Source: Cyanophora paradoxa CCMP329
Lineage: Eukaryota > Plantae > Glaucophyta
Direction: 5' to 3'
Length of the DNA: 64,000 bases
NCBI GenBank assembly: GCA_004431415.1
Contig: QPMI01000059.1
Location: forward strand, 1-64,000
Positions 11,404 to 60,811 of this stretch are shown piece after piece. Position numbers and translations under genes: made by a program. The number at the start of each line of letters is the position of its first letter. Positions within the stretch are counted from its first letter, which is position 1. The notes under the pieces are model-generated. The model had not been told where the DNA came from. It was given only the letters and a program-made list of their open reading frames with translations, and did not search any database.

Positions 11404-13789
11404 CAAGATCCGTGCTCCTGCGGAGCACTAAGTACGGCGAAGCCTCGCGGACGCCCTCGCGGCTGTCACAGTAGGCCTATAGGGCACTGGCCAGCGGCCT
11501 GGCCGATCGCGAACAGCTTTCTGGTTGGAAGCTGGCCGGCTGACGGCCAGTCCAGCTACCGCTGGCCGGCTAGAGGAATATAACTAGAGGAATATTAATG
11601 TACTGAGGAAATAAAGGGAGGCCGGAGCAGGTTGAGATTAGAGGAGATGAATTATATATAATATTGTTGAGAGGGAGGCCCGGGAGGGGCAAGGTTCTCG
11701 CGGCCAGGCGCATGCACAGAGCTTGCGAATCGCTTAAACAGAATCTTGAATGCATATAGCTATAGCATCGATGTGCGGGGCTGCGGAGGCGAGCGCGTGC
11801 GGAAAGATGTGCAGGTCCATGCAGGATCGAATTTTCGGGGTCGGCTGGGTCCTCGCGGCCCGTCGCATACGCAAAGCGTGCGGAAGACTTTGCCTACATC
11901 TTAAATGCTTATGCTATCGTTCCGCGCATGCGCCGCGGCGTGGGCGCGCGGAAAGATGTCAGGGCGCGTGCAGGATCGAATTTTGGCCGTCGGGTACCTT
12001 CCTGCGCTGTTCCGGCTCCGAAAAGCGGATTTCGGGGGTGCGCAGGCCCTGCTATGTCCATGCGCGCCAGTACGCATCGATTGCGCGCGTCGCGGGACCG
12101 GGCGGGACCGGCTAGCGCTGGATCAAATTTTCGGCCGACTCTTCGCACTGGAGCGTCGACGGCGCTTGAAATCGAGCTTGCGGCGATGCGCTCGCCCTCG
12201 CGCGGCATTCTGTATCGTTCTGGGGCGTCCCTGGCGCGATTTCGTCGCGGGACCGGGCGGGACCGGGTCCCACCTTCTGACTCGGACTGCATTTGTCGGA
12301 GGTTAAGTACCGGAATTGATCCAGAGGGAAATTCGATTTTCGCGCGACGCCCACGGGCGAGCGGTCGTCTTAGGGGAGCCACGACGCTAAAAATGGATCT
12401 AGAGAGGTCTGTGGGGTTAGGGTAGCTGAGTCATTAGCGGCAATCGCGTCCGTGTCGAGGCAGAATTAATAATTCGTCCTCGAGGGAGTGCGACGCGGAA
12501 ATTATTTAGCAGGGGGGATCTTGAGTGGAAAAAAAGGTTAAAAAAGGAATTTATATCGGCGGTTTTTGGGTTTGAGACAAGATCCGTGCTCCTGCGGAGC
12601 ACTAAGTACGGCGAAGCCTCGCGGACGCCCTCGCGGCTGTCACAGTAGGCCTATAGGGCACTGGCCAGCGGCCTGGCCGATCGCGAACAGCTTTCTGGTT
12701 GGAAGCTGGCCGGCTGACGGCCAGTCCAGCTACCGCTGGCCGGCTAGAGGAATATAACTAGAGGAATATTAATGTACTGAGGAAATAAAGGGAGGCCGGA
12801 GCAGGTTGAGATTAGAGGAGATGAATTATATATAATATTGTTGAGAGGGAGGCCCGGGAGGGGCAAGGTTCTCGCGGCCAGGCGCATGCACAGAGCTTGC
12901 GAATCGCTTAAACAGAATCTTGAATGCATATAGCTATAGCATCGATGTGCGGGGCTGCGGAGCTCGAGGCGAGGGCGCGCGGAAAGATGTGCAGGTCCAT
13001 GCAGGATCGAATTTTCGGGGTCGGCTGGGTCCTCGCGGCCCGTCGCATACGCAAAGCGTGCGGAAGACTTTGCCTACATCTTAAATGCTTATGCTATCGT
13101 TCCGCGCATGCGCCGCGGCGTGGGCGCGCGGAAAGATGTCAGGGCGCGTGCAGGATCGAATTTTGGCCGTCGGGTACCTTCCTGCGCTGTTCCGGCTCCG
13201 AAAAGCGGATTTCGGGGGTGCGCAGGCCCTGCTATGTCCATGCGCGCCAGTACGCATCGATTGCGCGCGTCGCGGGACCGGGCGGGACCGGCTAGCGCTG
13301 GATCAAATTTTCGGCCGACTCTTCGCACTGGAGCGTCGACGGCGCTTGAAATCGAGCTTGCGGCGATGCGCTCGCCCTCGCGCGGCATTCTGTATCGTTC
13401 TGGGGCGTCCCTGGCGCGATTTCGTCGCGGGACCGGGCGGGACCGGGTCCCCACTTCTGACTCGGACTGCATTTGTCGGAGGTTAAGTACCGGAATTGAT
13501 CCAGAGGGAAATTCGATTTTCGCGCGACGCCCACGGGCGAGCGGTCGTCTTAGGGAGCCACGACGCTAAAAATGGATCTAGAGAGGTCTGTGGGGGTTAG
13601 GGTAGCTGAGTCATTAGCGGCAATCGCGTCCGTGTCGAGGCAGAATTAATAATTCGTCCTCGAGGGAGTGCGACGCGGAAATTATTTAGCAGGGGGGATC
13701 TTGAGTGGAAAAAAAGGTTAAAAAAGGAATTTATATCGGCGGTTTTTGGGTTTGAGAAAGAGGCTTCGCCTGAAAGAGGCTTCGCCTGA
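11404..13789 (-). mobile_element. Non-autonomous Helentron/Helitron2-like element, dimer (E1; halves join at 12577/12578)
   Basis: The other array copies show the empty site AAATTAAA|TTGCCC, so there is no TSD and no deletion. On the minus strand the element reads 5'-TCA GGCGAAGCCTC ... GAGGCTTCGCC GTACTTA GTGCTCC-GCA-GGAGCAC GGATCTTG-3': 11-bp asymmetric inverted repeats, a 3' hairpin, and insertion at a T-run. Confidence 0.85.
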
Positions 13790-13862
13790 TTGCCCTTTCG
13801 CGAATTAATTCTCAGGATCCTCGAGCTCTTCTTCGAATCCAGCTTCGAATTTGGCGCGAAAA

Positions 13863-16839
13863 CAAGATCCGTGCTCCTGCGGAGCACTAAGTACGGCGAA
13901 GCCTCGCGGACGCCCTCGCGGCTGTCACAGTAGGCGGGCAGCTGCAGCCCCGCCCAGTTGCATGGCCGGGCTTCAAAAGTTTCGCCGGCTTGGCACTGGG
14001 GCAATGGGCTGGCCCGCTATAGCCAGCTCGAGGGAGAGCTCGCTGGCCAGGGAGCAATGTAATGAGGAGAGCGAATATATAATGAACTAGGGGAGGAGTT
14101 GAACCGGTAACTCTTGCTTTTAACTGGTGGAGCAGATTGATAGGAGATTTATTTAATATTAATGTATTGTTGGGGGGGAGGCCCGGGAGGGGCGAGGTTC
14201 TCGCGGCCAGGCGCATGCACAGAGCTTGCGAATCGCTTAAACACAATCTCGAATGCATATAGCATCGATGTGCGGGGCTGCGGAGGCGAGGGCGCGCGGA
14301 AAGACGTGCAGGTCCATGCAGGATCGAATTTTCGGGGTCGGCTGAATTCTCGCGCCCTGTCGCGCCCTTGGGGCTTGCATTACGCTTTGAAAAGCTCTCA
14401 AATGAATATTATAGCGATGCCCATGCATGAGGACGCGAGGGCGCGCGGAACGCGGTTCAGTTCCCTCAAGGATCGAATTTTCGGGTCGGCTGGGTCCCCG
14501 CGGCCCGGCGCATCTGCAAAGCGCGCGGAACGCTTGATCTACATCTCAAATGCTTATGCTATTGTTCCGCGCATGCGCCGTGGCGTGGGCGCGCGGAAAG
14601 ATGTCCAGGCGTGTGCAGGATCGAATTTTTGCCGTCGGCTGGGTTCTCGTGCTCTTTCGCGTCTTCAAAGCTTGTGGAAAACTTTGATAAAATCTCAAAT
14701 GAATATTGCGACGATGCGCATGCGCGAGAATGCGAGGGCGCGCGGAAAGATGTTCAGGTCTGTCAAGGATCGAATTTTCGGGGTCGGCTGGGTGCTCGTG
14801 ACCTGGTGCATTTAGACACCGTGCGGAAGTCTTTCTCTACATCTTAAATGGTTATGCTATCGTTCCGCGCATGCGCCGCGGCGTGGGCGCGCGGAAAGAT
14901 GTCCGGGTCTGTCCAGGATCGGATTTTTGCTGTCCGGTACCTTCCTGCGCTGCTCCGGGTTCGAAAAGCGGATTTCGGGGTGCGCGGGCCCTGGTATGTC
15001 TATGCGCGCCAGTACGCATCGATTGCGCGCGTCGCGGGACCGGCCGGAACCGGCCGGATCAAATTTTCGGCCGACTCTTCGCACTGGAGCGTCGACGGCG
15101 CCCAAAATCGAGCTTGCGGCGATGCGCTCGCCCTCGCGCGTCATTCTGTATCGTTCTGGGCGTCCCTGGCGCGATTTCGTCGCGGGACCGGGCGGGACCG
15201 GGTCCCACCTTCGGACTCGGACTGCATTTGTCGGAGGTTAAGTACCGGAATTGATCCAGAGGGAAATTCGATTTTCGCGGGATGCCTACGGGGGAGCGGT
15301 CGTCTTTGGGCAGCCACGACGCTAAAAATGGATCTAGAGAGGTCTGTGGGGGTTCGTGTGGGTGTGTGACTAGCAGCAATCGCGTCCGTGTCGAGGCAGA
15401 ATTATTAATTCTGCCTCGAGGGAGTGCGACACGGGAATTATTTAGCAGGGGGGATCTTGAGTGGAAAAAAAGGTTAAAAAAGGAATTTAGATCGTCGGTT
15501 TTTGGGTTTGAGACAAGATCCGTGCTCCTGCGGAGCACTAAGTACGGCGAAGCCTCGCGGACGCTCTCGCGGCTGTCACAGTAGGCCCGCGGAAAGGTCT
15601 GCAGGTCTGTAGAGGATCGAATTTTCGGGGTGGGCTGGGTCCTCGCGGCCCGGCGCAGCTATAAAGCGTGCGGAAGGCTTCTTCTACATCTCAAATGCTT
15701 ATGCTATTGTTCCGCGCATGCGCCGCGGCATGAGTGCGCGGAAAGATGTCCAGGCCGGTGCAGGATCAAATTTTTGCCGTCGGGTACCTTCGTGCGCTGT
15801 TCGGCATCCGAAAAGCGGATTTCGTGGGTGCGCAGGCCCTGCTATGTCTATGCGCGCCAGTGCGCATGGATTGCGCGCGTCGCGGGACCGGGTGGGACCG
15901 GCCGGATCAAATTTTCGGCCGACTCTTCGCACTGGAGCGTCGACGGCGCCCGAAATCGAGCTTGCGGCGATGCGCTCGCCCTCGCGCGTCACTCCGTATC
16001 GTTCTGGGGCGTCCCTGGCGCGATTTCGTCGCGGGACCGCGGAAAGGTCTGCAGGTCTGTAGAGGATCGAATTTTCGGGGTCGGCTAGGTCCTCGCGGCC
16101 TGGTGCATTTATAAAGCGTGCGGAAGTCTTCTTGTACATCTTAAATGCTTATGCTATCGTTCCGCGCGTGCGCCGCGGCGCGGGCGCGCGGAAAGATGTC
16201 CGGGCCTGTGCAGGATCGAATTTTTGCTGTCGGGTACCTTCCTGCGCTGTTCGGCCTCTGAAAAGCGGATTTCGGGGTGCGCAGGCCCTGCTATTTCTAT
16301 GCGCGCTCGTACGCATCGTTTGTGCGCTTCGCGGGACCGGCCGGAACCGGCCGGATCAAATTTTCGGGCGACTGTTCGCACTGGAGCGTCGAGGGCGCCC
16401 GAAATCGAGCTTGCGGCGATGCGCTCGCCCTCGCGCGTCATTCTGTATCGCTCTGGGCGTCCCTGGCGCGATTTCGTCGCGGGACCGGGCGGGACCGGTC
16501 CCACCTTCTGACTCGGACTGCATTTGTCGGAGGTTAAGTACCGGAATTGATCCAGAGGGAAATTCGATTTTCGCGGGACGCCCACGGGGAGCGGTCGTCT
16601 TAGGGAGCCAGGACGCTAAAAATGGATCTAGAGAGGTCTGTGGGGGTTCGGGTGGGTGTGTGACTAGCGGCAATCGCGTCCGTGTCGAGGCAGAATTAAT
16701 AATTCTGGCTCGAGGGAGTGCGACACGGAAATTATTTAGCAGGGGGGATCTCGAGTGGAAAAAAAGGTTAAAAAAGGAATTTAGATCGTCGGTTTTTGGG
16801 TTTGAGAAAGAGGCTTCGCCTGAAAGAGGCTTCGCCTGA
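13863..16839 (-). mobile_element. Non-autonomous Helentron/Helitron2-like element, dimer (E2; halves join at 15513/15514), with ~149-bp internal tandem repeats
   Basis: Same termini as E1. Empty site GGCGCGAAAA|CGCGTAC in the sister array copies, no TSD. AGGATCGAATTTT-like motif recurs near 14320, 14469, 14617, 14767 and 14915. Confidence 0.85.
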
Positions 16840-19800
16840 CGCGTACGCGATCGACATTGACCGCGCGATGCCGCCGAGGAAGCGCGTGCACAAGCAAGCG
16901 AATTCGAAGCAGTTGCAGACGACGGAGGCCATCGCGAATGCGGCGACGAACCTTCCAGGTCTAGAAGCGCTGGCGAATCTTGACCTCGAGCAGCTGCCCG
17001 GTGCGTGCGTGCGCGCTTGCCTGTACATGTGCCACGAAATTGACACGAAACTCGCAGATGACGTTCTTCTCGCCGTTTACCGCGGTGTAGTGCGAACGGA
17101 AGGCGTCTGCGGGCTCGTCCGCTCCCTTGGAGCCGCTTCTCGACGCCTTCGGCATCTCTGTTGGCAGCCTGAGTTCTTCGAGGAGCCCGAGCTCGCGATC
17201 GGGTGCGGAGTCCTCCTAATTATGACCCATGTCGACGTCCTTCGAATTCGACGTTAGATCTAGAATATTAATAGGAGGGAAGAGAGAGGATCGAGGGGAT
17301 CGCTTTAAAATTGCTTCGAGCTCGAGGGCCTAGCTCTTTTTCGAGGGCCCTGCATTGATTCTAGCTATATAGCTCGCCTTTTTGCGAAATTAAATTGCCC
17401 TTTCGCGAATTAATTCTCAGGATCCTCGAGCTCTTCTTCGAATCCAGCTTCGAATTTGGCGCGAAAACGCGTACGCGATCGACATTGACCGCGCGATGCC
17501 GCCGAGGAAGCGCGTGCACAAGCAAGCGAATTCGAAGCAGTTGCAGACGACGGAGGCCATCGCGAATGCGGCGACGAACCTTCCAGGTCTAGAAGCGCTG
17601 GCGAATCTTGACCTCGAGCAGCTGCCCGGTGCGTGCGTGCGCGCTTGCCTGTACATGTGCCACGAAATTGACACGAAACTCGCAGATGACGTTCTTCTCG
17701 CCGTTTACCGCGGTGTAGTGCGAACGGAAGGCGTCTGCGGGCTCGTCCGCTCCCTTGGAGCCGCTTCTCGACGCCTTCGGCATCTCTGTTGGCAGCCTGA
17801 GTTCTTCGAGGAGCCCGAGCTCGCGATCGGGTGCGGAGTCCTCCTAATTATGACCCATGTCGACGTCCTTCGAATTCGACGTTAGATCTAGAATATTAAT
17901 AGGAGGAAGAGAGAGGATCGAGGGGGATCGCTTTAAAATTGCTTCGAGCTCGAGGCCTAGCTCTTTTTCGAGGGCCCTGCATTGATTCTAGCTATATAGC
18001 TCGCCCTTTTTGCGAAATTAAATTGCCCTTTCGCGAATTAATTCTCAGGATCCTCGAGCTCTTCTTCGAATCCAGCTTCGAATTTGGCGCGAAAACGCGT
18101 ACGCGATCGACATTGACCGCGCGATGCCGCCGAGGAAGCGCGTGCACAAGCAAGCGAATTCGAAGCAGTTGCAGACGACGGAGGCCATCGCGAATGCGGC
18201 GACGAACCTTCCAGGTCTAGAAGCGCTGGCGAATCTTGACCTCGAGCAGCTGCCCGGTGCGTGCGTGCGCGCTTGCCTGTACATGTGCCACGAAATTGAC
18301 ACGAAACTCGCAGATGACGTTCTTCTCGCCGTTTACCGCGGTGTAGTGCGAACGGAAGGCGTCTGCGGGCTCGTCCGCTCCCTTGGAGCCGCTTCTCGAC
18401 GCCTTCGGCATCTCTGTTGGCAGCCTGAGTTCTTCGAGGAGCCCGAGCTCGCGATCGGGGTGCGGAGTCCTCCTAATTATGACCCATGTCGACGTCCTTC
18501 GAATTCGACGTTAGATCTAGAATATTAATAGGAGGGAAGAGAGAGGATCGAGGGGGATCGCTTTAAAATTGCTTCGAGCTCGAGGGCCTAGCTCTTTTTC
18601 GAGGGCCCTGCATTGATTCTAGCTATATAGCTCGCCCTTTTTGCGAAATTAAATTGCCCTTTCGCGAATTAATTCTCAGGATCCTCGAGCTCTTCTTCGA
18701 ATCCAGCTTCGAATTTGGCGCGAAAACGCGTACGCGATCGACATTGACCGCGCGATGCCGCCGAGGAAGCGCGTGCACAAGCAAGCGAATTCGAAGCAGT
18801 TGCAGACGACGGAGGCCATCGCGAATGCGGCGACGAACCTTCCAGGTCTAGAAGCGCTGGCGAATCTTGACCTCGAGCAGCTGCCCGGTGCGTGCGTGCG
18901 CGCTTGCCTGTACATGTGCCACGAAATTGACACGAAACTCGCAGATGACGTTCTTCTCGCCGTTTACCGCGGTGTAGTGCGAACGGAAGGCGTCTGCGGG
19001 CTCGTCCGCTCCCTTGGAGCCGCTTCTCGACGCCTTCGGCATCTCTGTTGGCAGCCTGAGTTCTTCGAGGAGCCCGAGCTCGCGATCGGGGTGCGGAGTC
19101 CTCCTAATTATGACCCATGTCGACGTCCTTCGAATTCGACGTTAGATCTAGAATATTAATAGGAGGGAAGAGAGAGGATCGAGGGGGATCGCTTTAAAAT
19201 TGCTTCGAGCTCGAGGGCCTAGCTCTTTTTCGAGGGCCCTGCATTGATTCTAGCTATATAGCTCGCCCTTTTTGCGAAATTAAATTGCCCTTTCGCGAAT
19301 TAATTCTCAGGATCCTCGAGCTCTTCTTCGAATCCAGCTTCGAATTTGGCGCGAAAACGCGTACGCGATCGACATTGACCGCGCGATGCCGCCGAGGAAG
19401 CGCGTGCACAAGCAAGCGAATTCGAAGCAGTTGCAGACGACGGAGGCCATCGCGAATGCGGCGACGAACCTTCCAGGTCTAGAAGCGCTGGCGAATCTTG
19501 ACCTCGAGCAGCTGCCCGGTGCGTGCGTGCGCGCTTGCCTGTACATGTGCCACGAAATTGACACGAAACTCGCAGATGACGTTCTTCTCGCCGTTTACCG
19601 CGGTGTAGTGCGAACGGAAGGCGTCTGCGGGCTCGTCCGCTCCTTGGAGCCGCTTCTCGACGCCTTCGGCATCTCTGTTGGCAGCCTGAGTTCTTCGAGG
19701 AGCCCGAGCTCGCGATCGGGGTGCGGAGTCCTCCTAATTATGACCCATGTCGACGTCCTTCGAATTCGACGTTAGATCTAGAATATTAATAGGAGGGAAG

Positions 19801-21272
19801 AGAGAGGATCGAGGGGGATCGCTTTAAAATTGCTTCGAGCTCGAGGGCCTAGCTCTTTTTCGAGGGCCCTGCATTGATTCTAGCTATATAGCTCGCCCTT
19901 TTTGCGAAATTAAATTGCCCTTTCGCGAATTAATTCTCAGGATCCTCGAGCTCTTCTTCGAATCCAGCTTCGAATTTGGCGCGAAAACGCGTACGCGATC
20001 GACATTGACCGCGCGATGCCGCCGAGGAAGCGCGTGCACAAGCAAGCGAATTCGAAGCAGTTGCAGACGACGGAGGCCATCGCGAATGCGGCGACGAACC
20101 TTCCAGGTCTAGAAGCGCTGGCGAATCTTGACCTCGAGCAGCTGCCCGGTGCGTGCGTGCGCGCTTGCCTGTACATGTGCCACGAAATTGACACGAAACT
20201 CGCAGATGACGTTCTTCTCGCCGTTTACCGCGGTGTAGTGCGAACGGAAGGCGTCTGCGGGCTCGTCCGCTCCCTTGGAGCCGCTTCTCGACGCCTTCGG
20301 CATCTCTGTTGGCAGCCTGAGTTCTTCGAGGAGCCCGAGCTCGCGATCGGGTGCGGAGTCCTCCTAATTATGACCCATGTCGACGTCCTTCGAATTCGAC
20401 GTTAGATCTAGAATATTAATAGGAGGGAAGAGAGAGGATCGAGGGGATCGCTTTAAAATTGCTTCGAGCTCGAGGGCCTAGCTCTTTTTCGAGGGCCCTG
20501 CATTGATTCTAGCTATATAGCTCGCCCTTTTTGCGAAATTAAATTGCCCTTTCGCGAATTAATTCTCAGGATCCTCGAGCTCTTCTTCGAATCCAGCTTC
20601 GAATTTGGCGCGAAAACGCGTACGCGATCGACATTGACCGCGCGATGCCGCCGAGGAAGCGCGTGCACAAGCAAGCGAATTCGAAGCAGTTGCAGACGAC
20701 GGAGGCCATCGCGAATGCGGCGACGAACCTTCCAGGTCTAGAAGCGCTGGCGAATCTTGACCTCGAGCAGCTGCCCGGTGCGTGCGTGCGCGCTTGCCTG
20801 TACATGTGCCACGAAATTGACACGAAACTCGCAGATGACGTTCTTCTCGCCGTTTACCGCGGTGTAGTGCGAACGGAAGGCGTCTGCGGGCTCGTCCGCT
20901 CCCTTGGAGCCGCTTCTCGACGCCTTCGGCATCTCTGTTGGCAGCCTGAGTTCTTCGAGGAGCCCGAGCTCGCGATCGGGTGCGGAGTCCTCCTAATTAT
21001 GACCCATGTCGACGTCCTTCGAATTCGACGTTAGATCTAGAATATTAATAGGAGGGAAGAGAGAGGATCGAGGGGATCGCTTTAAAATTGCTTCGAGCTC
21101 GAGGGCCTAGCTCTTTTTCGAGGGCCCTGCATTGATTCTAGCTATATAGCTCGCCCTTTTGCGAAATTAAATTGCCCTTTCGCGAATTAATTCTCAGGAT
21201 CCTCGAGCTCTTCTTCGAATCCAGCTTCGAATTTGGCGCGAAAACGCGTACGCGATCGACATTGACCGCGCG

Positions 21273-24200
21273 ATGCCGCCGAGGAAGCGCGTGCACAAGC
21301 AAGCGAATTCGAAGCAGTTGCAGACGACGGAGGCCATCGCGAATGCGGCGACGAACCTTCCAGGTCTAGAAGCGCTGGCGAATCTTGACCTCGAGCAGCT
21401 GCCCGGTGCGTGCGTGCGCGCTTGCCTGTACATGTGCCACGAAATTGACACGAAACTCGCAGATGACGTTCTTCTCGCCGTTTACCGCGGTGTAGTGCGA
21501 ACGGAAGGCGTCTGCGGGCTCGTCCGCTCCCTTGGAGCCGCTTCTCGACGCCTTCGGCATCTCTGTTGGCAGCCTGAGTTCTTCGAGGAGCCCGAGCTCG
21601 CGATCGGGGTGCGCTCGCACGCATGCACGCGGGGCTCGGGCTCACGTACACGCTGATCGCGCTCGCGACGTCGCAGCCCGCGCATTCGATAAGCATTCCC
21701 CTCCTCGAATCGTGTTTCAAGCACGCAGGAGTGCACGTCCGAAAGCTCTGCCTCAGCGGCGTTACCGTCGACGCGAAAAATGCGGAGAGCCATGAGTTCT
21801 TGTCGAACGTGCGCGCATATGAGATCGATCGGCTTGCGAATACTTTAATTTGCTTGCAGCTGCTGTGTCGGACGCCTGCGCTTACGCATCTCTCACTGGC
21901 GCACATGAACAGCCCGTTACCTTTGTCTCCAGCTGCAGCTGCGCATGCAGCATCTGCTGCGAGGAGGATCCAGACTGCTGCAGCGAATTCGAACAGGTCC
22001 GGGTCCGAATTCGAAGACGACTCCGCAGGATCCGATCCCGATTACTCCTCCGACGATGATTTCGGCGGCGTAAAGAGCACTGCGAGCTGGAAGCCGGTTT
22101 GACTATATATTATTTATTCAATACTGCGAAATATACATTCGCCCCGAAATCGAAGTGCGAACATTAATCTTCATGGTGCACGCGCATTCGCAAGCGCAGC
22201 TCGTTGCTTGGAAGCTGCCTGTGCCTCCTCTCAAGTCCCTCCACACTCTGAATCTTTCGGACATCATCCTTCCGTCGGATGCGCTGCGCGACGCCATCTC
22301 AGCCACCTGCGCAACCTTGCAATGTCTGATTCTCTCGTGCGCTATGTATTGCAATATAAGTATACGTAGACTCTGAGTCTCTGAGATCTGGAAGCTATCA
22401 AGTATACGTATAATTATAAATTATCTTCTAACTCTGACCGCGTCTTCGGCACGACAGCAACACCCTTGTCAGCCGACCACTCCGCACAAGCAGGGGGTTC
22501 ATGGGCTACGACGACGAGGACGAGGAGGGGACGCACTGGTCATCGGTCCTCTTTCCCCTTTCCAAGATGAAGCGCAAGTGAGCCATATATGCATTCTAAA
22601 TGCTTCAATATTATATAGTACTAGTGTTGCATTGTTTGACCTGCGCCTTGCAGGTTGCCGAATTTGCGCGTCTTGGACTTATCGCACGCGATCGTGGATG
22701 CCGACGCACTCGTCTCTTTCGTGAATAAGCACGCATCGCTCTCCGAACTCTATCTGGTGCTCCTGGGTTGCTCGAATTCGAAGCTGGCAACAGCATTCAA
22801 CTGTCAATATATATACAATTCAATTGCATAAGCTTAAGATGACGCCGACCGGCCCGGCACGCGCAGGCCGAGCTCCGACAACCTCCGGACGATGATGATA
22901 TGGGACCCGAGGACTGGGCCGAGTCCGTCTTATATTTCGCTAGCGCTGAAATATTAATTGCAATTGGGAATTCGAGGAATTCGAGAGCGGTAATGATTAT
23001 GACCGCAGTTTTGTGTGCCTGGAGTCCTGGTACTCGTCCGAGTACTCGTCCACCTTCGCACGCTTCAAGAAGAGAGCCGCGCTCACGATATTCGACAGCG
23101 ACATGTACAGCCAGGCCCGTACTTTGCGCTTGCAATTGTATATATAATTATAACTATAATATATAATTGAATTCGAATTCTAACCGTTGAACGATCACCG
23201 CAGGCAAACGCGCTTTTCGGGGTCTCTGGCCGTCCGGAGACGTCGGCGCAGCCGCTGGAGAAGGCCGGGTCGCTTCTCACCGCTCTATCGCGCGTTTCCG
23301 GCGGCGCCTGCGCGGGTCTCGAAGCGCCGAATCGTGAAGGCCGGACCCCTTTTCTCAGTCCGTTTATACCCAATCGTGATCATTCGTCTGCTCTTATCTA
23401 AATTAAAATGCTTAGTAATGCTCCCCGTGCCCGCTCAGCTGCCGTCGAGAACGGGAACCTGGAGCTCGCCCGCCGCCTCAAAGAAGCCGGCGCCGACCCC
23501 TTGGCCACGTGTCGCCCGTATCCGCACTCCGCCGCCAGCTCCGCCAAGCGCTGGGTGCCATCGTTCTTGTTTTTAAATAGCTAATGTTGAACGCCGTTAA
23601 TAGCTGTAATATATATTGATTGCTCTAATCCGCCAATCCCTTTCAGGGCAGCCCGTTTCCGTTCTTCGCACCCCGCTTCGACACTCAAGATCGCAGCTAC
23701 TCCAAAAGTTCACGATCCATATCCATGTGTGCTTAAAGCTTAAGCTTGCGCCTTGGAGCGATTATTGTTCTTCCTTTGACAAATTCTGCATGCGCAGCTC
23801 TGAGACGCAAAAAGAGAGAGGCGCTTCGGCGTTGCACATTCTTGCAATGCGAGATCCGACCGCGGGGAACATCGATATCAACCCCACTGAGATCGCCGAG
23901 GTTCGAAGTGCTGGCCGCCATGGCCGGTCGGGAAGTCGTATATTGTATAAATTTATAATTAACGTTAGCTACATATATGGTCATCAAGCTTTGCATGACT
24001 TTCGCTGCTGCAGGAGCTCCGTTCTCTGGGGCTTGCTCGCCTCGCGAACGCGCGGACGCAGGCCGGGCAAGGCCCCCTGCACGTGCACGCCGCCCGCGGT
24101 TCCGCCTCCAAATTCGTCATCACTGCTCTTCTCGAACTCGGCTCCGATCCATTTCTGAAGGCACAAGCCCTTGAATTCATTTGAATATCGATCTCGCCTT

Positions 24201-27710: not shown

Positions 27711-27888
27711 CTCCGGATTTCGCACTGCGGCACGCGCATTGCCGTGTCAGCTGGTGCCGGCGCAATTAACTCTTCTACGCAGCTGCTTCTATCCCCAACG
27801 CAGCTGCCCCGTACTTCATTGATATTACAAGACAGGGCGCAGTCCGCCACCTCGTGCCACTTCGCTGCCAGGCTGTCCCTTCGCTAGC

Positions 27889-29684
27889 CTACGGCCCGCC
27901 CCCGGCCCCTCCTGCCGGGCTTCCTCCCCCCTCGAATCGCGCAAGCCACGCGGCCCGGACCTGCCCCGGCCCCGAAGATCAGGTGAGCGGGCCCGGGAGG
28001 GGGGTACAAACAAACAGCTCCCCGCACCTGCTCCCGCACCGCCGCAGGGTTCGCGTCGGCCTGCGCGGGGAGAGGAAAGTCAGATGGCTCGGATAGGAAA
28101 CCAGGGGGGTAGAGAGCAAGCAAGGGGGTACCTGCTTCGCGGCGAGCTTCTTGGGCGCTGCGCCCTTGCGCTTCGCCGCGCCCTCGCGCGGGGCCGCGGG
28201 CGTGGCGGGGACCGCGGCTGGAGGCTGAGCCGGTGCCGGCGCCGGCGCCGGGCGGGGTACAGAAGAGGACGCCGCCGCTGGCGCAGGCGCCGCCGCTGCC
28301 GCCGCCGTTCCTCCGCGGGTAACGCTTTCGGACGCTCCTGCGGCCTCTGCCTCCCCCTCCCCCTTCCGCTTCTTCCCCTTCTTCTTGGCCTCCAGCTCTG
28401 CGGGGGGTACCAGGTCGCGTCGGCGCGCAATCTCGTACCCCCCTCTGAGGTTTCGCGTACCCGCCGCCTGGGCGCGGAAGATCGCCTGCTTGTCCTCCTG
28501 CCCCATGTCCCCGAACGCAGCCTGTGAGGGACACCGTGCGTTAGAATCAGGGTAGGGGGGTAGAGGGGGAGGGGGGTACGGGCTCGCCTCGAGCAGGGCG
28601 TCCTCGCGGTCGCCCTTCCGCTTAGCCGCGCGCCGTCTCGCCGCCGCCGGCTTAGCCTCCTCTTCCTCCTGCCACAGGCGTTCTCCAGTTAGATCCGAGG
28701 GGGGTACGCGCGCTCTCTCCGCACCTTTTCCTCCCCCTCCCCCTCCCCCTCCGCCTCCGCTTCGGCTGCCGCTTCCGCCTCCGCCTCCGCCTCCGCCTCC
28801 GCGGCGGTCCCCAGGCGGTGCCCTTGCCCCTTGAACTTGCCTGCGGACGCGGGACGCGCGCGTCAAGACGGGCGAGGAAAAAAACAGCAGAGCGGCGTCG
28901 GGCGGGCAGGCGCACCCTTTCCCTTGCCCTTGCCCTTGCCCTTTCCTTTCTCCTTCTCCGCCTGCTCCTCCTTGGGCTTCATGGTGGTCATCCGCTCGCT
29001 CTGGGCAGCGGCGGCGGCCTCAGCTAGCGGCGGCTGCTGGGCGGGCGCTCGGGCTCGGGTTCGCGCGGGCGGGCGGCGCACGGGTTTACTGAAGGCGCCC
29101 CACCCGACTGCATTCTGCGGCGTCGATGCTCAGCGGCGGCGGCGCGGGACGCGCGGCGCGTGCCGCTCTCGACGACCTTTGCTCTGCGGACGGCGGCGAG
29201 GAGCGTGTCGGTGCGCTCTCGGCGGGCGCTGGGCGGGCGGCGCACTTGATGCGGAAGCGCATCTTCGACTGCGGCGGGAGCCCTTCCAACCTGTGGTACA
29301 TCGAGTAGGCCCCGCCGTGCTGGAGCTGCTTCTCTGCGGGGCGGGCCGGTGCTCGCGGAGCGCAAGCGGAGGCCGATCGAGGAGGCCCGAGCGAGCCGCG
29401 CATCGCATCGCACCGTCCACGATGTGCTCGACGATCGCAATCTCGCTCCAGTCGGCTTCGGACTGCGACGGCTCCAGGCGCATTTCCACCGCGTACTCCT
29501 GCAGCGGGTTCCCGTAGCATCGCCGCGGCGGCACCCACTGCGGCCGCGCGTCGGGCCGGGGCAGTCGGGCGAGAGAGGCGCGTACGTGGAGCTCGAGCCA
29601 CGTGGGGCCGCGCCGGTGGCACTGCGGCGGATCTGGAGGGTCGGGCGCCCGCCGGATGCGCATGTCTCGGTCCTCGGCGGCCAT
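27889..29684 (-). CDS. Fibronectin type III domain protein with a Lys/Ala-rich low-complexity C-terminus, multi-exon
   Basis: FN3 hallmarks: APDPPDPPQ..GPTWLEL/WVPP..GNPLQEYAVE, YHRLEGLPPQSKMRFRIK, NAVGWGAFSKP. The intron motif appears as GGGGTAC on the plus strand, consistent with minus-strand transcription. Predicted last exon VRAAWLARFEGGGSPAGGAGGGP then TAG. Confidence 0.75.
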
Positions 29685-53295: not shown

Positions 53296-53788
53296 GCAAC
53301 GGGCCGGAGGGGTACATACAGTTTCTTAGCGTTTCGATATTAATGCTGTACGTATACCAAATTAATGCGTTTTCGTTGCATGCAGAAAACGCATTAATTA
53401 GGTACCACATTAATTAAGTGCGGGCATTAATAAAGTGCTTACGATAAGCCTATAAGCATGCACTGTGGCAATGCAGCGGCATATGCTGCGATGATATGCA
53501 TGCTGCCATGGCCAATGCCTGCCATATGGGGGCGCCGGCGCCGGCAGGGTTGGCAACTTGCTGCCAAATTAAAGTTAACGTTGCATGCTGGCACTGCGGC
53601 AACGTTAACGTGCTGCCAGCACAGCTACAGGCTGCACTGCGCACTGCGCAGTCTGCAGCTGCAGCCTGCAGCTGCCAGCCGCGCTGCCTGCCGCAGTGCG
53701 CATGCATGCTGGTTGGCTGACCAGGGCCTGACCCTGCATTTGACTGGTAGCTGACTAAGAACCAATCAGAAGTCATGGAATAATAAAA

Positions 53789-56354
53789 CAAGATCCGTGC
53801 TCCTGCGGAGCACTAAGTACGGCGAAGCCTCGCGGACGCCCTCGCGGCTGTCACAGTAGGCCTATAGGGCACTGGCCAGCGGCCTGGCCGATCGCGAACA
53901 GCTTTCTGGTTGGAAGCTGGCCGGCTGACGGCCAGTCCAGCTACCGCTGGCCGGCTAGAGGAATATAACTAGAGGAATATTAATGTACTGAGGAAATAAA
54001 GGGAGGCCGGAGCAGGTTGAGATTAGAGGAGATGAATTATATATAATATTGTTGAGAGGGAGGCCCGGGAGGGGCAAGGTTCTCGCGGCCAGGCGCATGC
54101 ACAGAGCTTGCGAATCGCTTAAACAGAATCTTGAATGCATATAGCTATAGCATCGATGTGCGGGGCTGCGGAGCTCGAGGCGAGGGCGCGCGGAAAGATG
54201 TGCAGGTCCATGCAGGATCGAATTTTCGGGGTCGGCTGGGTCCTCGCGGCCCGTCGCATACGCAAAGCGTGCGGAAGACTTTGCCTACATCTTAAATGCT
54301 TATGCTATCGTTCCGCGCATGCGCCGCGGCGTGGGCGCGCGGAAAGATGTCAGGGCGCGTGCAGGATCGAATTTTGGCCGTCGGGTACCTTCCTGCGCTG
54401 TTCCGGCTCCGAAAAGCGGATTTCGGGGGTGCGCAGGCCCTGCTATGTCCATGCGCGCCAGTACGCATCGATTGCGCGCGTCGCGGGACCGGGCGGGACC
54501 GGCTAGCGCTGGATCAAATTTTCGGCCGACTCTTCGCACTGGAGCGTCGACGGCGCTTGAAATCGAGCTTGCGGCGATGCGCTCGCCCTCGCGCGGCATT
54601 CTGTATCGTTCTGGGGCGTCCCTGGCGCGATTTCGTCGCGGGACCGGGCGGGACCGGGTCCCACCTTCTGACTCGGACTGCATTTGTCGGAGGTTAAGTA
54701 CCGGAATTGATCCAGAGGGAAATTCGATTTTCGCGCGACGCCCACGGGCGAGCGGTCGTCTTAGGGGAGCCACGACGCTAAAAATGGATCTAGAGAGGTC
54801 TGTGGGGGTTAGGGTAGCTGAGTCATTAGCGGCAATCGCGTCCGTGTCGAGGCAGAATTAATAATTCGTCCTCGAGGGAGTGCGACGCGGAAATTATTTA
54901 GCAGGGGGATCTTGAGTGGAAAAAAGGTTAAAAAAGGAATTTATATCGGCGGTTTTTGGGTTTGAGACAAGATCCGTGCTCCTGCGGAGCACTAAGTACG
55001 GCGAAGCCTCGCGGACGCCCTCGCGGCTGTCACAGTAGGAGGCCAGCTGGACCCGGCCCGCCCAGCTGCATGGCCGGGTTTCGCCGGCTTGGCACCGGCC
55101 ATGGGCTGGCCCGCTTTAGCCAGCTCGAGGGAGAGCTGGCTGGCCAGAGAGCAATGTAATGAGGAGAGGGAATATATAATTAACTAGGGGAGACCGGAGT
55201 TGAACCGGTAACGCTTGCTTTTAACTGGTGGAGCAGATTGAGAGGAGATTAACTATATAATATTGTTGGGAGGGAGGCCGCCGGGCCTGGGAGGGGCGAG
55301 GTTCTCGCGGCCAGGCGCATGCACAGAGCTTGGGAATCGCTTAAACAGAATCTAGAATGCATATAGCATCGATGTGCAGGGGTGCGGAGGCAAGGGCACA
55401 CGGAAAGCTTTGCAGGCCTGGCCAGGATCGAATTTTCGGGGTCGGCTGGATTCTCGCGCCCTGTCGCATCTCTAGAGTTCGCGAAAAGCTTGACAAAGAT
55501 CTCAAACTACTGTTGTAGGGATGCGCACGCGTGAGGATGCGAGGGCGCGCGGAAAGCTGTGCAGGTCCGTCCAGGATCGAATTTTCGGCGTCGGCTGGGT
55601 CCTCGCGGCCCGGCGCATTTAGAGACCGTGCGGAATGCTTTGTCTACATCTCAAATGCTTATGCTATCGTTCCGCGCATGCGCCGCGGCGTTGGCGCGCG
55701 GAAAGCTGTCCAGGTTTGTGCAGGATCGAATTTTTGATGTCCGGTACCTTCTTGCGCTATTCCGGCTCCGAAAAGCAGATTTCGGGGGTGCGCAGGCCCT
55801 GCTATGTCTATGCGCGCCAGTACGCATCGAATGCGCGCCTCGCGGAACCGGCCGGAACCGGCCGGATCAAATTTTCGGCCTACTGTTCGGACTGGAGCGT
55901 TGACGGCGCCCGAAATCGAGCTTGCGTCGATGCGCTCGCCCTCGCCCGTCACTCTTTATCGTTCTGGGGCGTCCCTGGCGCGATTTCGTCGCGGGACCGG
56001 GCGGGACCGGGTCCCACCTTCTGACCTGGACTGCATTTGTCGGAGGTTAAGGACCGGATTTGATCCAGAGGGAAATTTGATATTCGCGCGACGCCCACGG
56101 GGGAGCGGTCGTCTTAGGGGAGCCAGGACGCTAAAAATGGATCTAGAGAGGTGTGTGGGGGTTAGGGTAGCTGAGTCATTAGCGGCAATCGTGACCGTGT
56201 CGAGGCAGAATTAATAATTCTGCCTCGAGGGAGTGCGACACGGAAATTATTTATCAGGGGGGATCTCGAGTGGAAAAAAAGGTTAAAAAAGGAATTTATA
56301 TCGGCGGTTTTTGGGTTTGAGAAAGAGGCTTCGCCTGAAAGAGGCTTCGCCTGA
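53789..56354 (-). mobile_element. Non-autonomous Helentron/Helitron2-like element, dimer (E3; halves join at 54967/54968)
   Basis: Same termini as E1 and E2 (CAAGATCCGTGCTCCTGCGGAGCAC ... GAGGCTTCGCCTGAAAGAGGCTTCGCCTGA on plus). The left half is almost identical to the E1 halves; the right half is a different variant. Confidence 0.85.
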
Positions 56355-56550
56355 TGGAGCAGGCGGAAAATATTTATAGTTTTTTGTTTTAGTGAATTAC
56401 TGATGGAGTAGTCTCCCGAGTAGATCGCCCAAAAACTATAGCTAGTACTTTTAATTAGTACTATAAGTTAAATATGCAGCATACTAAATATTTCCGACGG
56501 TAACTTGGCAGTAAGTACTAAGTAATGCGCGCACTCAAGTAATGCATATG

Positions 56551-59500
56551 TAGGGGTGCGGCTTGCCGGCCAAAAAGTCGGCTTAAGCCAAGCCAAGCCC
56601 CGGGCGCTCGCGGTCAAGCCAAGCCAAGCCGGTCGAGTGGCCGGCCCAAGGGCTTGGGCTCCCGGCGGGGTCAAGCCCTTGGCCGGGCTTGCGGCAAGCC
56701 GAGGGGGGGTACTCTTTCGCAGGCCCTTAGCGCCGCCGCAAAATCAGGCGAAGCCTCTTTCAGGCCAAGCCTCTTTCTCAAACCCAAAAACCGACGATCT
56801 AAATTCCTTTTTTAACCTTTTTTTCCACTCGAGATCCCCCCTGCTAAATAATTTCCGTGTCGCACTCCCTCGAGGCAGAATTATTAATTTTGCCTCGACA
56901 CAGACGCGATTGCTGCTAGTCACACAGCCACCCGAACCCCCACAGACCTCTCTAGAGCCAATTTTAGCGTCCTGGCTCCCCTAAGACGACCGCTCTCCCG
57001 TGGGCGTCGCGCGAATATCGAATATTCCTCTGGATCAATTCCGGTTCTTAACCTCCGACAAATCCAGTCCGAGTCAGAAGGTGGGACCCGGTCCCGCCCG
57101 GTCCCGCGACAAAATCGCGCCAGGAACGCCCCAGAACGATACAGAATGACGCGCGAGGGCGAGCGCATCGCCGCAAACCCGATTTCGCGCGCCGTCGACG
57201 CTCCAGTGCGAAGAGTCGGCCGAAAATTTGATCCGGCCGGTTCCGGCCGGTCCCGCGACGCGCGCAATCGATGCGTACGGGCGCGCATAGACATAGCAGC
57301 GCCTGCGCACCCCCGAAATCCGCTTTTCGGAGCCGGAAGAGCGCAGGAAGGTACCCGACGGCAAAAATTCGATCCTAGACAGGCCCGGAGATCTTTCCGC
57401 GCGCCCGCGCCGCGGCGCATGCGCGGAACGATAGCATAAGCATTTGAGATGTAGAAGAAGCCTTCCGCACGGTCTCTAAATGCGCCGGGCCGCGAGGACC
57501 CAGCCGACCCCGGAAATTCGATCCTGGACGGACCTGCACAACTTTCCGCGCGCCCTCGCATCCTCACGCGAGCGCATCGCTACAATTTTCAGTTGACTCC
57601 TTTTTAAAGCTTTTCGCAAGCTCTGCAGGCGCGACAGGGCACGAGAACCCAGCCGACGCAAAAATTCGATCCTGGACATACCCGACGGCAAGAATTCGAT
57701 CCTAGACAGGCCCGGAGATCTTTCCGCGCGCCCACGCCGCGGCGCATGCGCGGAACGATAGCATATGCATTTTAGATGTAGAAGAAGACTTCCGCACGGT
57801 CTCTAAATGCACCAGGCCGCGAGGACCCAGCCGACCCCGAAAATTCGATCCTGTACGGACCTGAACATCTTTCCGCACGCCCTCGCATTCTCGCGCATGC
57901 GCATCGCTACAATATTCATTTGAGATTTTATCAAAGCCTTCCACAAGCTTCGAAGACGCGAAAGAGCACGAGAACCCAGCCGACGGCAAAAATTCGATCC
58001 TGCACGGACCCGGACATCTTTCCGCGCGCCCACGCCGCGGCGCATGCGCGGAACAATAGCATAAGCATTTGAGATGTAGGCAAAGACTTCCGCACGCTTT
58101 GCGTATGCGCCGAGCCGCGAGGACCCAGCCGACCCCGAAAATTCGATCCTGTACGTATACGGACCTGCACAGCTTTCCGCGCGCCCTCGCATCCTCGCGC
58201 GTGCGCATCGCTACAATAGTAATTTGAGATCTTTGTTAAGCTTTTCGCGAGCTCCGAGGACGCGACAGGGCGCGAGAATCCAGCCGACCCCGAAAATTCG
58301 ATCCTGCATGGACCTGCACGTCTTTCCGCGCGCCCTCGCCTCCGCAGCCCCGCACATCGATGCTATATACATTCGATCGCGAGATTCTGTTTAAGCGATT
58401 CGCAAGCTCTGTGCATGCGCCTGGCCGCGAGAACCTCGCCCTCCCGGGCCTCCTTCCAACAATATTATAATTAATCTCTTCTCAATCTGCTCCACCCTTT
58501 AGTTCCTCAGTAAATTAATATTCCTCTAGCCGGCCAGCGCTAGCTGGACTGGCCGTCAGCCAGCCAGCTTCCAGCCAGCTGCAGAAAGCTGTTCGCGATC
58601 GGCCAGGCCGCTGGCCAGTCGCTGAGTGCCCTATATATATAGGCCTACTGTAACAGCGGCGAGGGCGTCCGCGAGGCTTCGCCGTACTTAGTGCTCCGCA
58701 GGAGCACGGATCTTGTCTCAAACCCAAAAACCGACGATCTAAATTCCTTTTTTAACCTTTTTTTCCACTCGAGATCCCCCCTGCTAAATAATTTCCGTGT
58801 CGCACTCCCTCGAGGCAGAATTATTAATTTTGCCTCGACACAGACGCGATTGCTGCTAGTCACACAGCCACCCGAACCCCCACAGACCTCTCTAGAGCCA
58901 ATTTTAGCGTCCTGGCTCCCTAAGACGACCGCTCTCCCGTGGGCGTCGCGCGAATATCGAATATTCCTCTGGATCAATTCCGGTTCTTAACCTCCGACAA
59001 ATCCAGTCCGAGTCAGAAGGTGGGACCCGGTCCCGCCCGGTCCCGCGACAAAATCGCGCCAGGAACGCCCCAGAACGATACAGAATGACGCGCGAGGGCG
59101 AGCGCATCGCCGCAAACCCGATTTCGCGCGCCGTCGACGCTCCAGTGCGAAGAGTCGGCCGAAAATTTGATCCGGCCGGTTCCGGCCGGTCCCGCGACGC
59201 GCGCAATCGATGCGTACGGGCGCGCATAGACATAGCAGCGCCTGCGCACCCCCGAAATCCGCTTTTCGGAGCCGGAAGAGCGCAGGAAGGTACCCGACGG
59301 CAAAAATTCGATCCTAGACAGGCCCGGAGATCTTTCCGCGCGCCCGCGCCGCGGCGCATGCGCGGAACGATAGTATAAGCATTTGAGATGTAGAAGAAGC
59401 CTTCCGCACGGTCTCTAAATGCGCCGGGCCGCGAGGACCCAGCCGACCCCGAAAATTCGATCCTGGACAGATCTGCGCATCTTTCCGTGCGCCCTCGCAT

Positions 59501-60811
59501 CGTCACGCGAGCGCATCGCTACAATATGCATTTGAGATCGTTTTAAAGCTTTCCGCAAGCTCTGCGGGCGCGACAGCGCACGACAACCCAGCCGACGCCA
59601 AAAATTCGATCCTGGCCACGCCTGCACATCTTTCCGCGCGCGCTCGCCTCCGCAGCCCCGCACATCGATGCTATATGCATTCGAGATTCTGTTTAAGCGA
59701 TTGGCAAGCTCTGTGCATGCGCCTGGCCGCGAGAACCTCGCCCCTCCCGGGCCTCCTTCCCAACAATATTATAAAAATAAACTCCTCAAATTAGATTCGA
59801 TCCTGGACGGACCTGCACAGCTTTCCGCGCGCCCTCGCATCCTCACACGAGCGCATCGCTACAATATTCAGATGAGATTAAAGCTTTTCGCAAGCTCTGC
59901 GGGCGCGACAAGGCACGAGAATTCGAACCCAGCCAACGCAAAAATTCGATCCTGAACGGGCCTGCACAGCTTTCCGCGCGCCCTCGCCTCCGCAGCCCTG
60001 CACATTGATACTATATGCATTCGACGTTCTGTTTAAGCGATTCGCAAGCTCTGCGCATGCGCCTGGCTGCGAGAACCTCGCCCCTCCCGGGCCTAGGCCT
60101 CCCCCCCAACAATATATTAATAATACTAAATTAATCCGGTTCGACTCCTCCCCTAGCGTTACCGGTTCAACTCCTCCCCTAGTTATAATTAATTATATAT
60201 TCCCTCTCCTCATTACATTGCTCCCTGGCCAGCGAGCTCTCCATCGAGCTGGCTATCGCGGGCCAGCCCATTGCCGCAGTACCACGGTGCCAAGCCGGCG
60301 AAACCCGGCCATGCAGCTGGGCGCGCGCCGGCGGGGCTGCACCTGGCCGCCTACTGTGACAGCCGCGCGGGCGTCCGCGAGGCTTCGCCGTACTTAGTGC
60401 TCCGCAGGAGCACGGATCTTGTTTTAAATGCATATCATAGTATTAATTTAGCCAGTCCTCAGGGCCTCCTCTGGCATGGGGCGGAACTCCGCCGCCGCCG
60501 CTGCTAGCGCTGACGAGTCGCCCTCATCGCTTTCGCTGGGCGGAGGGCTCGAAGAGCTCGCTACAACGCTAGCGCTAGCTGCAGGCTGCCGTTGAAACGA
60601 GATGTTGCCGTCGGCCCCCTTGCCGATGGTCGTCTGCACGCTCTTGCTCTTGGGCGGCATGCCGGATGATGCCGCTGGCCTTATGATTGCGAACGCAGGC
60701 GTCGGCCCCCCCCCTCCTCCCCCCCCCCGCCAGGGCTTGAGCCGGCTTGAGCCGGCCAAAAGCCGGGCACAAGCCCTTGGCTCAAGGGCTTGACCGCAAG
60801 CCGCAGGCCTA
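56551..60811. mobile_element. Non-autonomous hAT-type element (~580 bp without the nested E4)
   Basis: 8-bp TSD TGCATATG at 56543-56550 and 60812-60819. TIRs TAGGGGTGCGGCTTGC and TAGGCCTGCGGCTTGC (14/16 match). Dense subterminal CAAGCC/GGCTTG motifs at both ends. An 8-bp TSD with YAGG-starting TIRs is typical of hAT. Confidence 0.85.
56744..60421 (+). mobile_element. Non-autonomous Helentron/Helitron2-like element, dimer (E4; halves join at 58715/58716), opposite orientation, nested in the hAT element
   Basis: Begins TCAGGCGAAGCCTCTT TCAGGCCAAGCCTCTT TCTCAAACCC and ends GAGGCTTCGCCGTACTTAGTGCTCCGCAGGAGCACGGATCTTG followed by TTTT. Inferred site GCAAAA|TTTTAA. Many ~150-bp internal repeats marked by AAAATTCGATCCT. 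Confidence 0.85.

Follow-up and report, generated by a model that had tools for sequence, protein, structure and literature searches.

Layout of the four loci

Four loci (E1 to E4) in the window, by which we mean the whole 64-kb stretch of DNA analysed here, share one layout, in which two 16-bp heads are followed by a body A and a body B (Table 1). The head occurs eight times in the window (0.06 expected by chance), always in adjoining pairs and at these four loci; only one copy, the second head of E4, carries a mismatch (G to C). Where body A meets body B, an 18-nt joint links the 3' end of the former to the beginning of the latter, and its sequence is likewise exact at every locus (0.02 expected). 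At every locus, the inner unit is placed exactly between base 16 and base 17 of the outer unit, and no bases were gained or lost. The rest of the window holds no solo head, no solo body and no other fragment of the family.

E1 to E4 are complete nests, i.e. one unit lies inside another of the same family. The order of two heads and then two bodies points to the nesting of a complete unit after base 16 and not to a head-to-tail concatemer, and such nesting is the simplest origin of the layout. A preliminary description had already read the loci as dimers with two stacked 16-bp heads and two bodies, which the paired heads and the exact joints confirm. It had also set them apart from a simple head-to-tail concatemer, and we agree, as the heads stand stacked at the 5' end with the bodies behind them, just as nesting gives. 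Since no monomer was seen in the window, the mobile unit is one that we infer and do not observe. TRF calls the heads as a 2.1-copy tandem repeat.

Table 1. Positions of the nested dimers, their bodies and the surrounding host array in the window
Feature	Position	Strand	Remarks
Host tandem array, left part	9315..11403		period 630 bp, ~99.6% identity among units
E1, nested dimer	11404..13789	-	heads 13774-13789 and 13758-13773
E1 inner body A	12578-13757	-	1180 nt, type I variant
E1 outer body B	11404-12577	-	1174 nt, type I variant
Array piece between E2 3' end and E1 5' end	13790..13862		73 bp, same array unit, in phase
E2, nested dimer	13863..16839	-	heads 16824-16839 and 16808-16823
E2 inner body A	15514-16807	-	1294 nt; internal duplication; of the 3' part, the last 74 nt alone retained
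E2 outer body B	13863-15513	-	1651 nt
Host tandem array, right part	16840..21613		7.6 units
E3, nested dimer	53789..56354	-	heads 56339-56354 and 56323-56338
E3 inner body A	54968-56322	-	1355 nt, type II variant
E3 outer body B	53789-54967	-	1179 nt, type I, 99.6% identity to E1A
E4, nested dimer	56744..60421	+	heads 56744-56759 and 56760-56775; head-to-head with E3, 389 bp apart
E4 inner body A	56776-58715	+	1940 nt
E4 outer body B	58716-60421	+	1706 nt

Empty sites in the host array

Two of the dimers, E1 and E2, interrupt a tandem array of the host. The three parts of this array add up to 11.0 units, and both dimers lie inside one and the same unit. The empty site of E1, GGGCAA^TTTAATTT, is present in nine other array units and that of E2, GTACGCG^TTTTCGCG, in ten; the empty-site joints (11402>13789 and 13861>16839) were found in all four short-read-contig runs. 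Compared with these sites, each of the two dimers as a whole was inserted precisely and immediately 5' of a T run, and the target was not duplicated. Indeed, neither the empty sites nor the flanks revealed a target duplication at any of E1 to E4; variable target duplications are known from one-ended Helitron2 events (PMC3627910). Because the 73 bp between E1 and E2 are the array's own sequence in phase, the two dimers represent separate insertions, and the same 73 bp rule out that E2, the spacer and E1 form a single read-through element.

Twenty runs cover the stretch, all as short-read contigs, which on the repeat measure ~110-160 nt and are too short to span a dimer or to count monomers. A contig with at least three heads is found in three independent runs (X17, X5 and X2), and slippage of the 16-bp repeat, instead of a trimer, could be its source. 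Such slippage is one part of an explanation by two unrelated events, in which the head slipped and the body was duplicated by unequal exchange; the tandem-repeat call for the heads and the contig with at least three heads are in line with it. However, the body duplication must then begin at base 17 and stop at the 3' terminus, four times and with unlike halves. Assembly collapse or a chimera is unlikely, as no two of the loci have the same sequence and each is bordered by flanks of its own. We regard both two unrelated events and an assembly artefact as hardly credible.

Termini and class of the element

One unit consists of the 16-nt head and a body of 1.2-1.9 kb. The head begins with TC and contains the hairpin AGGC-GAA-GCCT, which doubles as the 5' arm of an asymmetric inverted repeat of 11 bp (GGCGAAGCCTC and its complement) that is identical across the eight units. 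Three nt precede the 5' arm, which begins at base 4. The 3' arm is followed after 7 nt by the 3' hairpin, and 32 nt separate the arm from the 3' terminus; DNA folding predicts for this hairpin, located 8 nt before the terminus, a 7-bp stem with a GCA loop. Each body closes with the 3' arm of the repeat, the hairpin with its 7-bp stem and GGATCTTG, and the element ends in CTTG. Both terminal hairpins are short-stemmed, with fold energies no better than those of shuffles (z about -1). In addition, every body contains a variable 149-bp minisatellite.

The bodies hold only overlapping, GC-driven ORFs, without an Rfam family or a tRNA. An exact look-up of twelve element ORFs returned no record, a profile search with the 235-aa element ORF gave one weak match (E 1e-4) that we take as unrelated, and none of the gene models in the collections overlaps the family. 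No match to Rep or Pif1 was found in 10 of the 12 window ORFs of at least 250 aa, and no autonomous partner lies within the 64-kb window. Exact-pattern scans for the head-body joint in metagenome, viral and prokaryote-genome contigs, and scans for the 3' terminus in metagenome contigs, gave no match either.

Judged from these sequence features, the family is best explained as a non-autonomous member of the Helitron2 branch of rolling-circle transposons with a HINE or DINE-1-like build. The termini, the hairpins and the empty sites also support the earlier assignment of Helitron2/HINE-type ends without target duplication. Canonical Helitrons (Helitron1) start with 5' TC, end with 3' CTRR, insert at A^T and are without terminal inverted repeats. 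The present family differs from them by its CTTG end, its inverted repeats and its insertion between a G or A and a following T. The 5' TC is the sole feature that it has in common with them.

Insertion sites and the nest point

Is the nest point simply one more target site of the family? The 3' flanks read TTT[TA] at all four loci, a motif with a per-position frequency of 0.006, whereas the last genomic base before the element is G once and A three times, never T. In the genome, the insertions occupy the 5' border of a T run (N^TTT or NT^TT). An insertion at TT, as proposed in the preliminary description, holds only when the ends are shifted by one ambiguous base. The nest point, taken there as the usual TTT target of the family, lies at the opposite, 3' edge of a T run (TT^TC or TTT^C), which argues against an ordinary target choice.

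The dimers are also unevenly placed: with 73 bp between E1 and E2 and 389 bp between E3 and E4, they form two tight pairs (p = 0.003 versus random TTT[TA] sites). Local hopping from a neighbour was rejected as the cause, since the members of a pair are different variants.

Composition of the dimers

The two halves of a dimer are related to a very different degree from locus to locus. Bodies A and B of E1 share 99.0% identity over 1180 nt, those of E2 share 92.6% over the first 780 nt and are rearranged beyond, those of E3 share 90.9% over 790 nt and ~72% beyond, and those of E4 show 2 differences in the first 737 nt and diverge beyond. These pairwise identities agree with the first impression of near-identical halves in E1, different variants in E2 and E3 and partly different halves in E4.

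It is very improbable that the dimers stem from rolling-circle read-through or re-initiation in which a single template was copied a second time after a restart at the TCTC opening the body. The clean joint from the 3' end to the start of the body would fit such a re-initiation, as would the 99% likeness of the E1 halves and the nearly identical first 737 nt in E4. However, more than one lap of a circle would give head-body-head-body and not two heads followed by two bodies. Moreover, the halves of E2 and E3 differ by 6-9% as well as in structure, yet E3B is 99.6% identical to E1A, so that the halves do not come from one template. This is clearest in E3, whose young outer half (99.6% to E1A) is combined with an inner half that differs by ~7%, which rules out a single template for both.

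The four dimers are four different combinations of variants. E1A, E1B and E3B, which represent the 1.18-kb variant, are 99-100% alike, and each carries 2-4 private changes, none of them common to just two; this variant thus occurs once as an inner and twice as an outer half, with different partners. The inner halves do not form a clade (p-AU 2e-6). Taken together, the different combinations, the lack of an inner clade and the recurrence of one variant with different partners suggest that nests formed repeatedly. We conclude from these sequence comparisons that the nests probably arose by at least three or four separate joinings of different members and are not copies of one ancestral dimer. 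Between the two options raised at the outset, recurrent targeting and a composite mobile dimer, the four combinations and the inner halves without a common lineage favour recurrent formation. The 5' and 3' parts of the halves support conflicting groupings, which indicates that recombination or conversion is active and could blur any history.

Alternatively, one ancestral nest may have become the transposing unit, which would start at the outer head, be read past the inner 3' end and stop at the outer 3' end, and whose halves would later be swapped by gene conversion or template switching. The inner 3' end would perhaps be read past owing to the TCTC, and not a T run, that lies downstream of it. 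This would account for four exact dimers that are each a precise insertion and for the lack of a two-head, one-body copy, which the Fusarium model expects after remobilisation (PMC5148889); the mosaic halves, with E4A equal to E4B over the first 737 nt, indicate that exchange between halves does occur. However, no two dimers share their composition, the inner halves are no lineage, and type I is found both inside and outside with star-like private changes. Even this reading would need no fewer than three or four independent events of joining or conversion. We consider an ancestral nest unlikely, although it deserves to be kept in mind.

Origin of the nests

We hold it to be reasonably probable that the dimers arose by recurrent nesting of complete units in a non-autonomous family of the Helitron2 branch, at a nest point selected by the transposase. 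The nest point lies two bases past the 5' hairpin and repeat arm and would be chosen through recognition by the family's putative Rep-helicase transposase. We speculate that this enzyme would treat the nest point like the site 5' of the TC at its own left end, cutting it and pasting in a circular single-stranded copy. The same attraction to the 5' end would explain insertions within 73 and 389 bp of resident copies.

If nesting struck resident copies independently, one would expect a mixture of monomers, dimers and trimers, but each of the four loci is exactly a dimer. With a Poisson number of hits, such an outcome has a probability of at most ~0.02, a figure that overstates the case because the window was picked for its regularity.

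It is also conceivable, if rather doubtful, that the family has a second, site-specific mode of integration at its own 5' hairpin and that nesting takes place between transposition intermediates. A single-stranded circle would then enter another circle or a peeling strand two bases past the paired 5' arm, and new genomic insertions would already be dimers from two different donors. If true, this would explain why each copy is a dimer of different composition, and it would provide a handle on how the Helitron2 transposase chooses and cuts DNA.

For recurrent nesting of complete units in general, E1 to E4 provide direct sequence evidence of self-insertion, as full nests are kept at a fixed position by the 5' hairpin with exact empty sites alongside (E1 and E2). 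So far, target choice and multiplied 5' ends have been inferred from a few fungal copies that retain extra 5' ends alone. To our knowledge, Helitron2/Helentron transposition has never been reconstituted, and the nest point offers a specific candidate site of cleavage, open to assay with purified Rep domain. Furthermore, a rolling-circle element is seen here to build hierarchical repeats of 16 bp, 149 bp and 1.2-1.9 kb, and the family clusters in AT-rich patches near genes, which bears on the origin of satellite-like DNA.

Comparison with known systems

The Helitron2 group was described from Chlamydomonas reinhardtii and others (Bao and Jurka 2013, PMC3627910) and is mobilised by a Rep-helicase element (Y2 HUH plus Pif1-like) with matching ends. 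Like this group, the family analysed here has short asymmetric repeats, a 5' hairpin that includes the 5' arm and a 3' arm just before the 3' hairpin; both the asymmetric repeats and the hairpins at the two ends are present in E1 to E4. A T start, a normal lack of target duplication and plentiful non-autonomous derivatives are further common points (PMC3627910). The published Helitron2 repeats of 8-15 bp have their 5' arm at or near the end (0-2 nt) and their 3' arm ~20-30 nt from the end, whereas the distances are 3 nt and 32 nt here. The target differs as well: Helitron2 inserts at TTTT^T/C, with the T run 5' (PMC3627910), while the genomic T run of E1 to E4 lies 3' and only the nest point comes near the published register.

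HINE or DINE-1 elements are non-autonomous Helentrons (Thomas et al. [quoted passage not shown] In that study, HINE elements have palindromic subterminal repeats that begin a few nt inside the 5' end, tandem repeats in the centre and, 8-35 nt before the 3' end, a short palindrome; their target is T-rich and, as paralogous empty sites show, left unmodified. The present family resembles them in these points. The HINE subterminal repeats given there measure 12-15 bp, at distances of 2-4 nt (5' end) and 38-60 nt (3' end), so that our repeat, with 11 bp and 32 nt from the 3' end, falls just beyond the published ranges. Regular nesting into the own 5' end is not described in the accessible sections of PMC4067079. 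Satellites borne by Helentrons are known from oyster (PMC7492417).

Tandem Helitron arrays formed by rolling-circle amplification have been reported for plant centromeres, bats and Xenopus (cited in PMC5148889; PMC12001565). They also contain several units of the same family that are directly joined with a precise 3'-end joint. However, those arrays are head-to-tail or truncated, whereas E1 to E4 have their heads stacked at the 5' end and the bodies behind, which is the mark of nesting.

The preliminary description knew of no family with such a structure, a statement that needs correction in view of the Helitron2-type elements FoHeli1 and FoHeli2 of Fusarium oxysporum, in which the 5' terminus is present two to five times, a multiplication attributed to self-insertion close to the 5' end (Chellapan et al. 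2016, PMC5148889; TR4 study 2026, PMC13342296). The same two papers report a three-copy case in Metarhizium acridum and the detection of joined-end circles for FoHeli. As in FoHeli1/2 (PMC5148889), the 5' end analysed here starts with TCAG and forms a GAA-loop hairpin that doubles as the asymmetric inverted repeat. Stacked 5' termini, the sign of a self-insertion composite, are present as two 16-nt termini at each of the four loci. In the Fusarium model, a remobilised copy begins at the outer 5' terminus, stops where the first 3' terminus is reached and is left with that one alone (PMC5148889), whereas all four of our loci have two complete 3' termini. Indeed, the Fusarium copies, with a duplicated 5' piece of 31, 65, 73 or 85 nt and a single 3' terminus, are derived, while in E1 to E4 nesting always took place after 16 nt and the two complete units persist, each with its 3' terminus. 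FoHeli further differs by its ATTTT end and its insertion at TNAT^A, compared with the CTTG end and the position 5' of a genomic T run here, and the present family is non-coding and resides in a GC-rich, apparently non-fungal eukaryote with viral insertions. E1 to E4 show with great regularity a habit, self-insertion, that was known before from fungal Helitrons; they extend a known behaviour and do not represent a new kind of element.

Results

Eight copies of the 16-nt head TCAGGCGAAGCCTCTT are found in the window, against 0.06 expected by chance; they lie at four loci (E1-E4), every one in an adjacent pair. With element limits taken from sequence reading and from comparison of one body against the whole window, the order is alike in E1-E4: head, head, inner body (A), outer body (B). 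The 18-nt joint between the bodies, i.e. the 3' end GGATCTTG followed by the next body start TCTCAAACCC, is exact at 4/4 loci. The preliminary description of two heads and two bodies, four times over, was right on all points that could be checked. Comparison of the body against the whole window revealed no further pieces of the family elsewhere. The inner body of E2 carries a direct duplication and has lost its 3' region save for a terminal 74 nt that includes the repeat arm and the hairpin; thus, a unit can lack the greater part of its 3' half and yet be the inner member of a nest.

Coordinates of the elements, their host array and other features of the window
Feature	Position	Strand	Remarks
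E1	11404-13789	-	body A 1180 nt, body B 1174 nt
E2	13863-16839	-	body A 1294 nt, body B 1651 nt
E3	53789-56354	-	body A 1355 nt, body B 1179 nt
E4	56744-60421	+	body A 1940 nt, body B 1706 nt
630-bp tandem array	9315-11403, 13790-13862, 16840-21613		11 units
Duplication in E2 inner body	15584-16039 vs 16034-16487		~455 nt; body positions 324-778 again at 769-1224
E3-E4 spacer	56355-56743		389 bp, between the facing 5' ends; AT-rich first half, then a GC-rich part in which CAAGCC motifs recur
Adjacent segments just upstream of the array	7629-8326, 8646-9382		70-79% identical mutually and to 27869-28495
ORF	42930-44072	+	weak ABC2_membrane match, E 2e-5, below Pfam cut-off
Short local tandem duplications	3663-3882, 46842-47345, 47976-48189		unrelated to the Helitron2 family

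The head contains a small hairpin, AGGC-GAA-GCCT. Reverse-complemented, head bases 4-14 recur as an 11-nt stretch ending 32 nt from the 3' end, where the order is 11-nt arm, 7 nt, hairpin with a 7-bp stem, 8 nt and end. Within the bodies, 149-bp repeats form a variable array, and higher periods of 297-340 bp occur as well; minisatellites within Helitron2 elements were known before (PMC12001565, PMC7492417). No credible coding or RNA content was found in the bodies, and no Rep or Pif1 match in 10 of the 12 window ORFs of at least 250 aa. A canonical Helitron is ruled out by the CTTG end, the inverted repeats and insertion that is not at A^T. The termini follow the design of Helitron2 (PMC3627910) and, in overall build, that of HINE/DINE-1, non-coding derivatives of Helentrons (PMC4067079). 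The partner of E1-E4 may be either an endonuclease-bearing Helentron or a plain Rep-helicase element.

E1 and E2 both lie, 73 bp apart, inside one and the same unit of a host array of 11 tandem units (period 630 bp, between-unit identity ~99.6%), and the remaining units served as paralogous empty sites. In the empty site of E2, GTACGCG directly abuts TTTTCGCG, and in that of E1, GGGCAA directly abuts TTTAATTT; in the filled sites the whole element stands between the two, with no base duplicated and none lost. A 9-bp target duplication is absent from the four loci. Both empty-site joints were found in short-read contigs from four independent public runs. The 73-bp spacer is array sequence in phase with the array, so that E1 and E2 represent two separate insertions. 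The two segments just upstream of the array resemble a dispersed family of genes or repeats beside it.

The 3' flank starts with TTT[TA] at all four elements (motif frequency 0.006 per position), and the last bases of the 5' flanks are G, A, A and A. Because element and 3' flank both start with T, the cut is ambiguous by one base and can be written as N^TTT (ends T...G) or NT^TT (ends C...GT), further shifts being impossible. The insertions fall into two tight pairs, spaced 73 and 389 bp (p = 0.003 when sites are drawn at random from the 539 TTT[TA] motifs left in the window after taking the elements out). This pairing fits an attraction of incoming copies by resident ones; since the partners are different variants in each pair, the neighbour was not the donor. 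E3 and E4 lie in an AT-rich patch (GC 0.55-0.59; genome 60-72% GC).

Were the halves of each dimer copied from one template? Over the first 560-580 nt, E1A, E1B and E3B (type I) are 99.6-100% alike, E4A equals E4B, E2A and E2B are reciprocal best matches (94.8%), and E3A (type II) is set apart from the other halves. The final 250 nt group differently, as {E1A, E1B, E3B, E4A} vs {E2B, E3A, E4B}, with E2A represented by its terminal 74 nt; the units are therefore mosaics. The inner halves are not a clade: forcing them into one lowers the log-likelihood by 161 units (p-AU 2e-6), and inner/outer labels cluster no more than in shuffles. Each type I half carries 2-4 private changes and none is common to just two, which makes them three separate copies of one source, used once as inner and twice as outer half with differing partners. 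E3 joins a young outer half to an inner half that is ~7% different and built differently. Taken together, these comparisons mean that halves were joined on at least three or four separate occasions, and rule out both copying of the two halves from one template and a single ancestral dimer whose halves merely diverged.

Discussion

A head-head-body-body order is exactly the product expected when a complete unit, comprising head and body, is placed between bases 16 and 17 of another. Rolling-circle replication of more than one lap would instead yield head-body-head-body, unlike E1-E4, and chance duplication would need to have its limits precisely at base 17 and at the 3' end four times. Nest depth is exactly a dimer at 4/4 loci; independent hits on resident monomers would predict a range of nest depths. 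Two accounts remain. Dimers, once formed, could be mobile as units by read-past of the inner 3' end, directly downstream of which stands TCTC and not a T run. Alternatively, nesting could take place between single-stranded intermediates, such that insertions arrive already dimeric. Contigs of three runs contain a form with three or more heads, the 16-nt period being continued by a loose end at 16806; slippage could be another source of it. Taking the empty-site contig as about ten array units, relative contig depth gives rough figures of very roughly 50-60 copies for the type I 3' region and ~10 for E2B-specific segments.

In genomic insertions the element enters a T run at its 5' edge, whereas the nest lies at the opposite edge of the head-body TTT (TT^TC or TTT^C) and thus departs from the register of ordinary targets. 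The nest point is two bases past the 5' repeat arm; the normal left-end cut lies 16 nt upstream of it, and both cuts are 5' of TC. Transposase docked on the left end, or on the repeat arms when these are paired, would presumably cut at the nest point and use it as a target.

The head design is very near the 5' ends of FoHeli1 and FoHeli2 of Fusarium, which start with TCAG and carry a GAA-loop hairpin doubling as inverted repeat (PMC5148889). Chellapan et al. reported FoHeli copies that repeat the first 31-85 nt with one 3' terminus, and proposed that elements insert into themselves close to the 5' end and are then remobilised; in Metarhizium acridum they described a three-copy case, ascribed either to two insertions into the 5' end or to rolling-circle replication (PMC5148889). 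According to a 2026 study, many FoHeli1 copies of the TR4 lineage have two, three or five 5' termini (PMC13342296). The nested layout of E1-E4 is in substance already described in fungi. The papers cited do not report nests that are complete and undegraded, one fixed nest point for all copies, exact empty sites alongside nests, or nests as the sole form across a 64-kb stretch.

In summary, the feature first noted is real and its first reading was right in outline. E1-E4 are of use mainly as clean, natural material for working out how Helitron2 elements recognise their ends and choose targets, and their nesting is an unusually regular form of known Helitron2-type behaviour.
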